Shown: positions 20,960-41,162 of the stretch, one piece after another | Numbering within the stretch: the stretch's first letter is position 1 | How the letters are laid out: the number at the start of each line of letters is the position of its first letter | Sequence record: OR258281.1 | DNA: 64,000 bases | Strand: one strand, 5' to 3' | Made by a program: the position numbers and the translations under genes | The notes under the pieces: model-generated | The model's input: only the letters and a program-made list of their open reading frames with translations | Database searches by the model: none | Told to the model about the DNA's origin: nothing

Positions 20960-20976
20960 AAAGCAGTAAATTTTTT

Positions 20977-21005
20977 TGAAACGATTTTGAAAGATGTACT
21001 ATACT
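20977..21005 (+). promoter_or_regulatory. phage-type promoter TGAAAC-N17-TATACT (copy 2)
   Basis: Ends 10 nt before tRNA-Ser. Confidence 0.75.
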
Positions 21006-21015
21006 ATTAGTACTT

Positions 21016-21103
21016 GGAGAGTTGGGTGAGCGGCTTAAACCAACAGTCTACTAAATTGTCGCAGAGAAATCTGCCGTGGGTTCGAATCCCACACTCTCCG
21101 CCA
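21016..21103 (+). tRNA. trnS: tRNA-Ser, anticodon ACT
   Basis: GGAGAGT/ACTCTCC acceptor, anticodon arm ACAGT-CT-ACT-AA-ATTGT, long variable arm, TTCGAAT T-loop, GCCA end. Confidence 0.9.
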
Positions 21104-21232: not shown

Positions 21233-21302
21233 AGCCCATATAGGTAATGTGTTCGGCCTCTAAAACCAAAACACAAGAGTTCAAGTCTCTTATGGGTTAC
21301 CA
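21233..21302 (+). tRNA. degenerate tRNA, most likely CTA (amber) anticodon
   Basis: AGCCCAT/ATGGGTT acceptor, AAGAG-TTCAAGT-CTCTT T-arm, ACCA end, loop CT-CTA-AA; weak anticodon stem, no D-stem. Confidence 0.45.
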
Positions 21303-21349
21303 ATTCTAATGGAGAATAAATTATGAAATAGACCAAACCATCTTTAAAA

Positions 21350-21679
21350 ATGTTTCGCTGGGGTAACGATAAGTACTCACATTTAGGTTATAGAATTTTC
21401 ACACTTGCTTATTGTAAGAGATTCGACTTATATCTCTTTAAGTACAATGAAGGTTCGTTTATTCCTAAGCATAAAGATCCCTCTTTTGGGATGCGACACT
21501 ACCGACTTAATTTAGTACTAAAGAAGCCGGATAAAGGTGGAGAGTTTATTTGTAATAATAAAATCTTCTCTATATTCAATGATAGAATCATGCTCTTTAG
21601 AGCAGATACTGAGTACCATAAGATTACAAAAGTTGAAAAGGGTACTAGATGGCTACTGAGCCTCGGTATCAGACTATGA
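21350..21679 (+). CDS. 2OG-Fe(II) oxygenase
   Basis: HKD..GGEF..H...RW facial-triad pattern. Confidence 0.7.
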   Translation: MFRWGNDKYSHLGYRIFTLAYCKRFDLYLFKYNEGSFIPKHKDPSFGMRHYRLNLVLKKPDKGGEFICNNKIFSIFNDRIMLFRADTEYHKITKVEKGTRWLLSLGIRL

Positions 21680-25780: not shown

Positions 25781-26191
25781 ATGGATAAACCACAGTACTC
25801 TTGTTACATAGTACTCCGAAAAGACTTAGATATGCCTGTTGGTAAGTTCTCTGCACAAGTAGGACACGCAGTAGGTAAAATCTTTGAGTACTACATGACA
25901 CAAAAAGAACATCACCGAAATACCGATGATGAAGAACTTCTTTCACGTGTCAGTACTTTTGAGAACTGGAACAAAGAAGGTGGCGGTCACGGTGGTAAGA
26001 AAGTAATTCTTAAAGCCGATACTGAACTTAAACTTGAAAATCTTCGTAAGAAACTTAACGAAGACAATGTTAAGTACTTCGATATTTTCGATTACGGATA
26101 TAACTTCTTTGACGGTTTAACTTGTACTGGATTAGTACTTTATCCACGTCAGGAAGAACTAAAATACATTAAACGCTTACAGTGTTGGTGA
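25781..26191 (+). CDS. pth2: peptidyl-tRNA hydrolase, Pth2 family
   Basis: IVLRKDLDMPVGKFSAQVGHAV..KKVILK..D.G..T signature. Confidence 0.85.
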   Translation: MDKPQYSCYIVLRKDLDMPVGKFSAQVGHAVGKIFEYYMTQKEHHRNTDDEELLSRVSTFENWNKEGGGHGGKKVILKADTELKLENLRKKLNEDNVKYFDIFDYGYNFFDGLTCTGLVLYPRQEELKYIKRLQCW

Positions 26192-31705: not shown

Positions 31706-31797
31706 GGGCCAGTTGGCTAGTGGCCGAAGCCGCTCGACTCATAATCGATTACAGTTAACCAGACACATCACAGGTTCGAATCCTGTCTGGCCCACCA
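31706..31797 (+). tRNA. tRNA with CAT anticodon (Met or Ile2) and a 20-nt extra arm
   Basis: GGGCCAG/CTGGCCC acceptor, CT-CAT-AA loop, TTCGAAT T-loop, ACCA end. Confidence 0.85.
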
Positions 31798-41086: not shown

Positions 41087-41162
41087 GCTCCTATAGTTAA
41101 ACTGGACATAACCTGAACCTTCTAAGTTCATGTTCCCCGTTCGAGTCGGGGTGGGAGTGCCA
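41087..41162 (+). tRNA. trnR: tRNA-Arg(TCT)
   Basis: TGAAC-CT-TCT-AA-GTTCA arm; GCCA end. Confidence 0.93.

Follow-up and report, generated by a model that had tools for sequence, protein, structure and literature searches.

A tRNA-Ser with an ACU anticodon in Xanthomonas jumbo phage XaC1 is probably an unedited A34 decoder of AGU codons

Xanthomonas phage XaC1 carries a class II tRNA-Ser gene with the anticodon ACU, and the tRNA encoded there is probably a decoder of essentially AGU codons only, in which the adenosine at the wobble position (A34) stays unedited. The original prediction had set this reading beside a second one, namely an anticodon change that escapes a host anticodon nuclease. 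The first is now the best supported, as AGU is the commonest serine codon of the phage, an identical anticodon loop resists the deaminase TadA, and no TadA is encoded by the phage; we infer the expression of the gene, its charging, the unmodified state of A34 and the gain for the phage.

The DNA analyzed (hereafter, the window) is a stretch of 64 kb corresponding to the 3' end of the XaC1 record OR258281.1, to which it is 100% identical, with record position equal to 284,967 + w for window position w. XaC1 is a 348,967-bp Rak2-like jumbo myovirus of X. vesicatoria with a G+C content of 35%; that of the Xanthomonas host is about 65%. The whole record holds eight tRNAs, all of them inside the window, and tRNA-Ser(ACU) is the sole Ser tRNA among them. 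GenBank already annotates the gene at 21016-21103 as tRNA-Ser (XaC1_458), and Table S4 of the XaC1 paper gives 'Ser ACT' both by ARAGORN and by tRNAscan-SE, an anticodon that receives no comment in that work (PMC11273794). The features of the window discussed below are the following:

20976..21005, + strand: candidate sigma-70-like promoter, TTGAAA-18 nt-TATACT, with 10/12 consensus matches, ending 10 nt before tRNA-Ser
21016..21103, + strand: tRNA-Ser(ACU), class II, 88 nt, G73, encoded CCA (ARAGORN, Rfam RF00005, fold, XaC1_458, covariation)
21050..21052, + strand: anticodon ACU, with A34 at 21050, within the loop CUACUAA at 21048-21054 (from the sequence)
21233-21302, + strand: degenerate tRNA-like element of 70 nt with a CUA (amber) anticodon (ARAGORN at lowered threshold, 'tRNA-Pyl(cta)')
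31706-31797, + strand: 'tRNA-Met(CAU)', 92 nt, a class II-like body with CAU, A73 and roughly 21 nt of variable region
41087..41162, + strand: phage tRNA-Arg(UCU), the cognate AGA reader (ARAGORN)

The gene was predicted from the letters alone to be a well-formed class II Ser tRNA with the loop CT-ACT-AA, and this is confirmed. ARAGORN, the check originally proposed, calls a tRNA-Ser with anticodon ACT at 21016-21103 on the + strand, its score on the Rfam tRNA model RF00005 is 52.5 bits (E = 7.5e-9; gathering score, 29), and the minimum free energy fold is a cloverleaf (z = -2.6). The anticodon stem has 5 bp (ACAGU/AUUGU) and encloses the 7-nt loop C32-U33-A34-C35-U36-A37-A38; the variable arm folds into a stem of 5 bp (GCAGA/UCUGC), three of whose pairs covary among relatives. 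Moreover, the 7-bp acceptor stem contains G1:C72, G2:C71 and A3:U70, and is followed by the discriminator G73 and an encoded CCA end. G73 and these three pairs, the identity set of E. coli SerRS, are invariant in 10/10 sequences of the XaC1 clade. The gene is thus a canonical class II tRNA-Ser with all Ser identity features that can be read from a sequence, and serylation of its product is predicted.

The clade was assembled from relatives reached through homologues and cluster members of the neighbor gene XaC1_459 (window 21350-21676). A syntenic tRNA-Ser with the anticodon ACT was found in 8/8 contigs from eight different public samples of Logan, ENA and JGI: L376 and L377 (Logan, approximately 90% DNA identity), L378 to L380 (two from ENA, including a 349-kb contig, and one from JGI), L381 (a 158-kb ENA contig), and L382 and L383 (Logan). 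XaC1 itself was not found among public sequencing runs (best share of words, 0.11); four public runs yielded contigs about 90% identical to XaC1 across tRNA-Ser. The presence of ACT at the syntenic site in eight contigs of eight samples rules out a base-calling error, and the anticodon base, whose confirmation in relatives had been proposed, is thereby confirmed. A ninth contig, L374, has the orthologous tRNA at the syntenic place with the anticodon GCT; its acceptor and D arms are identical to those of XaC1, and its anticodon stem is completely different.

The ten sequences of the clade reduce to six distinct rows, in which ACU is represented by five distinct alleles from nine sources. Over this alignment, 98.7% of cloverleaf cells are paired, compensatory double changes occur in 11 of the 25 pairs, and all five pairs of the anticodon stem covary; none of 500 shuffles and no slid register approached the observed pairing. 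The loop CUACUAA is invariant across the five ACU alleles. Since the stems covary around a constant loop, A34 is a maintained feature, neither an error nor a fresh mutation. Outside these contigs, three homologues of the neighbor gene (P0004, P0005 and P0003) lie in contexts without a Ser tRNA, and a search of IMG/VR for the exact XaC1 anticodon arm with any base at position 34 gave no match. The one match to this arm in JGI metagenomes (L367) was rejected, as it belongs to an unrelated tRNA with the anticodon TCT (Arg).

Upstream of the gene, both hexamer regions of the promoter candidate are invariant in relatives in which the upstream sequence has otherwise diverged. Promoter-like matches are no rarer in this A+T-rich DNA than in shuffles, and the resemblance of TTGAAA-TATACT to a promoter is suggestive only.

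We then turned to the codons that such a tRNA would serve. Codon counts were taken from 382 non-overlapping XaC1 ORFs of at least 100 aa, which cover 81% of the genome. AGT is the commonest Ser codon, with 2613 occurrences (36% of Ser codons, 27.9 per 1000 codons), and AGC occurs 458 times (6% of Ser codons). The AGT:AGC ratio asked for by the original prediction is accordingly 5.7 in the phage, as compared with 1.4 to 3.8 in the other two-codon pyrimidine boxes; a value of this size is similar to that of four-codon boxes. In the sister phage XbC2, which carries a GCT tRNA, the ratio is 3.8. AGU codons had also been said to be abundant partly through the hexamer AGTACT, and this proved right: AGTACT occurs 1356 times in the XaC1 genome against 118 expected from base composition (11.5-fold), and 504 of 2609 in-frame AGT codons (19%) are followed by ACT, that is, lie inside AGTACT. 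Without the codons inside this hexamer, the AGT:AGC ratio is still 4.6:1. No other 6-bp palindrome in XaC1 comes near AGTACT in over-representation, and one copy of AGTACT lies at window 21009-21014, just before tRNA-Ser. CGGCCG, CCGCGG, CCCGGG, CAGCTG, AGGCCT, AGCGCT and other G+C-rich palindromes are completely absent from the genome.

Ten abundant virion genes were considered separately. In these genes, the codon choice of Asn (odds ratio 0.44, p = 1.5e-9) and of Phe (odds ratio 0.66, p = 0.012), the two boxes that XaC1 serves with G34 tRNAs, moves toward codons ending in C. AGT is still the top Ser codon there, with an AGT:AGC ratio of 4.2:1, and the preference for it is slightly weaker (odds ratio 0.72, not significant).

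A published phage/host AGT ratio of 4.2 (Table S6, PMC11273794) is rough, as its host column, with TGA at 1.1%, appears to correspond to the whole genome read in one frame. In Tables S6-S8, among them Table S7, the same work also takes the anticodon string as a codon, so that, for instance, the tRNA 'ACT' is placed under the Thr codon ACT. Anticodon-as-codon matching combined with a one-frame host table makes the codon-compensation counts of that paper unreliable (PMC11273794).

The XaC1 gene is not an isolated case. One identical tRNA-Ser(ACU) is common to Salmonella phages 7t3, SE_PL, Munch and PHA46 and to Klebsiella phage fENko-Kae01, and Erwinia phage Hallingskeid has a copy at 97.8% identity. 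Rhizobium phage RHph_TM30 also has a tRNA-Ser(ACU), annotated as 'tRNA-Ser(act)'. Besides XaC1, the cultured carriers thus include six jumbo phages of enterobacteria, and at least one more carrier infects Rhizobium. The closest tRNA relatives among cultured phages are those of Rak2-like jumbo phages, of which GAP32, CBB, BF17 and RaK2 have GCT. In IMG/VR, a pattern combining the ACT loop, class II spacing and the T-loop, followed by ARAGORN confirmation, gave at least 64 tRNA-Ser(ACT) among the 120 loci listed, with at least 55 unique sequences; the contigs bearing them range from 25 to 52% G+C among the matches listed.

The frequency of ACU was estimated from an IMG/VR scan left unbiased by allowing R at position 34. 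Of 80 stretches listed, 64 carried GCT only, 8 ACT only, 1 both, and 7 no tRNA. ACT is thus present in 9 of the 73 tRNA-bearing loci, or approximately 12% among the matches listed (8-13% allowing for unlisted matches), a frequency that holds for the Ser(NCU) subset with the loop and T-loop fixed by the patterns. In by-catch tRNAs of the IMG/VR loci listed, A34 occurs in 5 of 203 tRNAs of the six other two-codon pyrimidine boxes, against 9 of 74 for Ser(NCU) (odds ratio 5.5, p = 0.003). In cellular genomes, 12 of the 120 pattern matches listed are tRNA-Ser(ACT). An ACT-type and a GCT-type Ser tRNA occur together, by pattern match, in the Patescibacteria MAGs L254, L286 and L314 and in Polynucleobacter L264, and ARAGORN calls the ACT copy tRNA-Ser in the three Patescibacteria. 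Ser tRNAs with A34 thus exist outside viruses as well, and both anticodons are present together in some phages and some cells. Hence, the earlier statement that essentially restricts A34 tRNAs to tRNA-Arg(ACG) was drawn too narrowly, given that roughly a tenth of the comparable phage Ser(NCU) genes are Ser(ACU) and that this tRNA is also found in some Patescibacteria and Polynucleobacter genomes. In L254 and L286, the ACT copy is clustered with the tRNA genes Gln-ttg and Lys-ttt.

The ACU tRNAs also differ from the GCU ones outside the wobble base. On a tree of 153 unique Ser(NCU) tRNAs with the wobble base masked, 25 changes of state between ACT and GCT are needed, as compared with 48.3 +/- 3.0 for shuffled labels, and the nearest GCT partner of any ACT tRNA is at most 82% identical to it. 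With about 90 columns, the tree is indicative only; it speaks for several long-standing ACT lineages and against a multitude of recent slips. Moreover, ACT tRNAs bear a signature in the anticodon stem, with G30:C40 in 84% and either U31:A39 (55%) or C31:G39 (37%), where GCT tRNAs have C30:G40 (70%) and C31:G39 (79%). The ACT stem pattern is similar to that of phage tRNA-Ser(UGA).

Codon usage was compared between ACT and GCT carriers in IMG/VR on the 4-15 kb around the tRNA genes of the loci listed. AGT is more frequent in ACT carriers (17.4 vs. 14.3 per 1000 codons, p = 0.007), but the fraction AGT/(AGT+AGC) does not differ between these loci after correction for G+C (coefficient -0.06 +/- 0.10). 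As this corrected fraction does not differ, codon demand alone does not predict which phages carry A34: it fits XaC1, but alone it does not explain who carries this base.

Both the systematic stem differences and the failure of codon usage to separate ACU from GCU carriers after G+C correction speak for the nuclease-escape reading, in which A34 and a remodelled stem would hide the phage Ser tRNA from a host factor that cleaves or depletes tRNA-Ser(GCU), so that AGY decoding continues. XaC1 also encodes a polynucleotide kinase as well as two RNA ligases, and such equipment for tRNA repair is suggestive of pressure from tRNA nucleases. To our knowledge, no nuclease specific for Ser(GCU) has been described, and none was found here, which leaves this part of the original prediction without direct support. 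Anticodon-loop changes have been proposed to let phage tRNAs evade anticodon nucleases, but the same work names tRNA-Ser(gct) as untargeted by nucleases in mycobacteria (PMC10264068). In addition, if the host GCU tRNA were destroyed, AGC codons would gain no reader from a tRNA with A34, and the carriers infect unrelated hosts (Xanthomonas, Salmonella, Klebsiella, Erwinia, Rhizobium and many uncultured ones), which makes a single cognate nuclease unlikely. We therefore regard nuclease escape as an unlikely explanation of the ACU anticodon, and the preferred reading remains that of an unedited decoder of AGU.

A further possibility is that host TadA, or an unrecognized enzyme, deaminates A34 to inosine (I34), so that one tRNA would read both AGU and AGC. 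The loop of the XaC1 tRNA shares C32, U33, A34, C35, A37 and A38 with the TadA substrate tRNA-Arg(ACG) and differs from it at position 36 only, where U36 stands in place of G36; moreover, some bacteria deaminate more than one A34 tRNA, Oenococcus oeni being the example given in a work cited in PMC11066159. Nevertheless, a published experiment on this very loop counts against editing. [quoted passage not shown] Only A was present at position 34 of this version, and inosine was found only with ACG, AUG and AAG, a TadA specificity measured in E. coli and not in Xanthomonas (PMC11066159). For the ACU tRNA, reading amounted to 9.4% at AGU and 0.36% at AGG, and none was detected at AGC or AGA (PMC11066159). 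Likewise, PMC11066159 cites Takai et al. (1999) for the observation that A34, placed in the body of a Ser tRNA, prefers codons ending in U when assayed in vitro.

The genome of XaC1 is in agreement with these data. No TadA-like gene was found in it: its sole gene of the cytidine-deaminase fold, XaC1_157, scores 38 bits on the TadA model (cut-off 150) and has ComEB and dCMP deaminase as best matches, so that a phage-encoded TadA was rejected in favor of a dCMP-deaminase-like protein. Furthermore, editing of the Ser tRNA, unlike that of tRNA-Arg(ACG), would cause Arg-to-Ser misreading at AGA, a codon used 7.9 times per 1000 in XaC1. The phage tRNA-Arg(UCU) would compete against such near-cognate reading. 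Among the IMG/VR contigs listed, the median AGA usage is 13.6 per 1000 codons in ACU-bearing and 15.2 in GCU-bearing contigs, that is, ACU phages do not avoid AGA; I34 would then be costly, which again counts against editing. Altogether, editing of A34 to inosine appears even less probable than escape from a nuclease. Least credible of all is a non-decoding tRNA-shaped RNA (a regulator, decoy, primer or source of fragments) or a neutral relic in which A34 is tolerated drift. The window does contain the degenerate CUA element, probably no ordinary decoder, but the Ser tRNA keeps its full cloverleaf, G73 and CCA end, covaries strictly in every stem around a loop constant in five alleles, and has an anticodon that, if drifting, would not stay ACU in eight relatives or recur in about 12% of the comparable Ser(NCU) genes of phages.

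The unedited A34 tRNA can be fitted into the decoding of the infected cell as follows. The host is expected to offer only the G34 tRNA-Ser(GCU) for AGY codons, and this tRNA would form Watson-Crick pairs with AGC but need wobble for AGU. An A34 isoacceptor would be added by the phage for its own AGU-rich messages, and the few phage AGC codons would be left to the host tRNA-Ser(GCU). In the phage tRNA, A34 would keep a plain adenosine and read AGU by Watson-Crick pairing. Such a base would be tolerated because SerRS recognizes the long variable arm and the acceptor end rather than the anticodon, because TadA needs G36, so that the ACU loop escapes deamination, and because A34 pairs poorly with A or G, so that the Arg codons AGA and AGG are not misread. 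SerRS makes no contact with the anticodon; PheRS, CysRS, AsnRS, AspRS and TyrRS each rely on position 34 or on the anticodon, and GUN tRNAs also gain U-reading through queuosine. As SerRS is blind to the anticodon, a change from G34 to A34 would carry no charging cost, which fits the odds ratio of A34 in Ser(NCU).

The XaC1 tRNA can be set against several known systems. It shares with tRNA-Ser(GCU) the class II architecture, G73, the acceptor identity pairs, U36-A37 and the loop context. tRNA-Ser(GCU) has G34 with C30:G40 and C31:G39, whereas ACU tRNAs have A34, G30 and a pyrimidine at position 31; the former reads AGC better than AGU, whereas the XaC1 tRNA is expected to read AGU only. Genomically encoded A34, thought to stay adenosine, is likewise present in Mycoplasma tRNA-Thr(AGU) and yeast mitochondrial tRNA-Arg(ACG) (PMC11066159, PMC3711424). 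Those tRNAs serve four-codon boxes in reduced genomes and read several codons; the A34 tRNA of XaC1, in contrast, works in a split box (AGY Ser/AGR Arg), where only U-specific reading would be harmless, and would be a viral supplement to the set of the host. The engineered orthogonal M. jannaschii tRNA with ACU has the identical loop, is not deaminated and is AGU-specific in E. coli (PMC11066159), but it is a synthetic tyrosine-accepting class I construct, as opposed to a natural class II Ser tRNA, from a phage of Xanthomonas, known from its sequence. Finally, Bailly-Bechet et al. reportedly modeled in 2007 how phage-encoded tRNAs compensate for codon usage. XaC1 resembles such cases in being an A+T-rich phage in a G+C-rich host, with 8/8 of its tRNAs reading A/U-rich codons; codon compensation normally works with standard anticodons, whereas in the XaC1 Ser tRNA the wobble base itself is altered toward the U-ending codon.

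From the recurrence and the stem signature, we tentatively propose, as a possibility of somewhat less than even standing, that phage tRNA-Ser(ACU) forms a widespread and long-maintained natural class of unmodified-A34 tRNAs. This class would amount to about one-tenth of comparable phage Ser(NCU) genes, with its own G30:C40 and U31:A39/C31:G39 signature, and its members would act as 'private' AGU decoders that speed phage messages but not the AGC-rich messages of the host, permitted by an anticodon-blind SerRS and by the rejection of U36 by TadA. Plain A34 is almost absent from cellular tRNA sets, and knowledge of the rules of A34 decoding comes for the most part from engineered tRNAs, together with a few cases in Mycoplasma and mitochondria. 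If the proposal is true, the largest natural collection of A34 decoders is that of phages; cells nearly always avoid this state. Cultivable natural A34 systems would be available in XaC1 on Xanthomonas and in Munch and 7t3 on Salmonella; such systems could show how A34 decodes in vivo and why cells avoid it, and whether phages match the wobble base itself, in addition to tRNA dosage, to the codons they use. When phages are annotated or codon-adaptation indices computed, 'Ser-ACT' should count as a reader of AGU. Phage tRNA-Ser(ACU) is not discussed in the literature searched, which was open access only and is thus weak evidence of novelty; within it, the conservation with covariation, the frequency of about 10%, the stem signature and the serine rationale appear to be undescribed.

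Several minor observations were made on other tRNA genes. A further A34 tRNA beyond Arg(ACG), namely Leu-aag, Thr-agt, Tyr-ata, Cys-aca or Asp-atc, accompanies Ser(ACT) in 8 of 64 IMG/VR loci (L023, L030, L032, L037, L038, L066, L106 and L134), as compared with 4 of 86 tRNA-bearing loci of the GCT scan, among the matches listed; some phages may thus make broader use of A34. The CUA element shows a compensatory acceptor-stem change in the relative L376, and its counterpart directly follows the Ser tRNA in L374, L378, L381 and L382. Downstream of it, the string ATG-AAA-TAG, in frame with the annotated start of XaC1_459 (start region 21323-21352), allows an upstream extension of this gene and is conserved in L374. 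Long Met(CAT) genes like that of XaC1, which may be Met, Ile2 or of another identity, were also seen elsewhere, with 90 nt in the sister phage XbC2 and 94 nt in the IMG/VR contig L018. Lastly, in addition to the two RNA ligases and the polynucleotide kinase, the tRNA-maintenance kit of XaC1 comprises a tRNA-His guanylyltransferase, a CCA-adding enzyme and a tRNA amidotransferase (61886-64758, 105846-106580, 124968-126230 and 132571-134862 of the XaC1 record for the kit), and a peptidyl-tRNA hydrolase is annotated at window 25781-26191.
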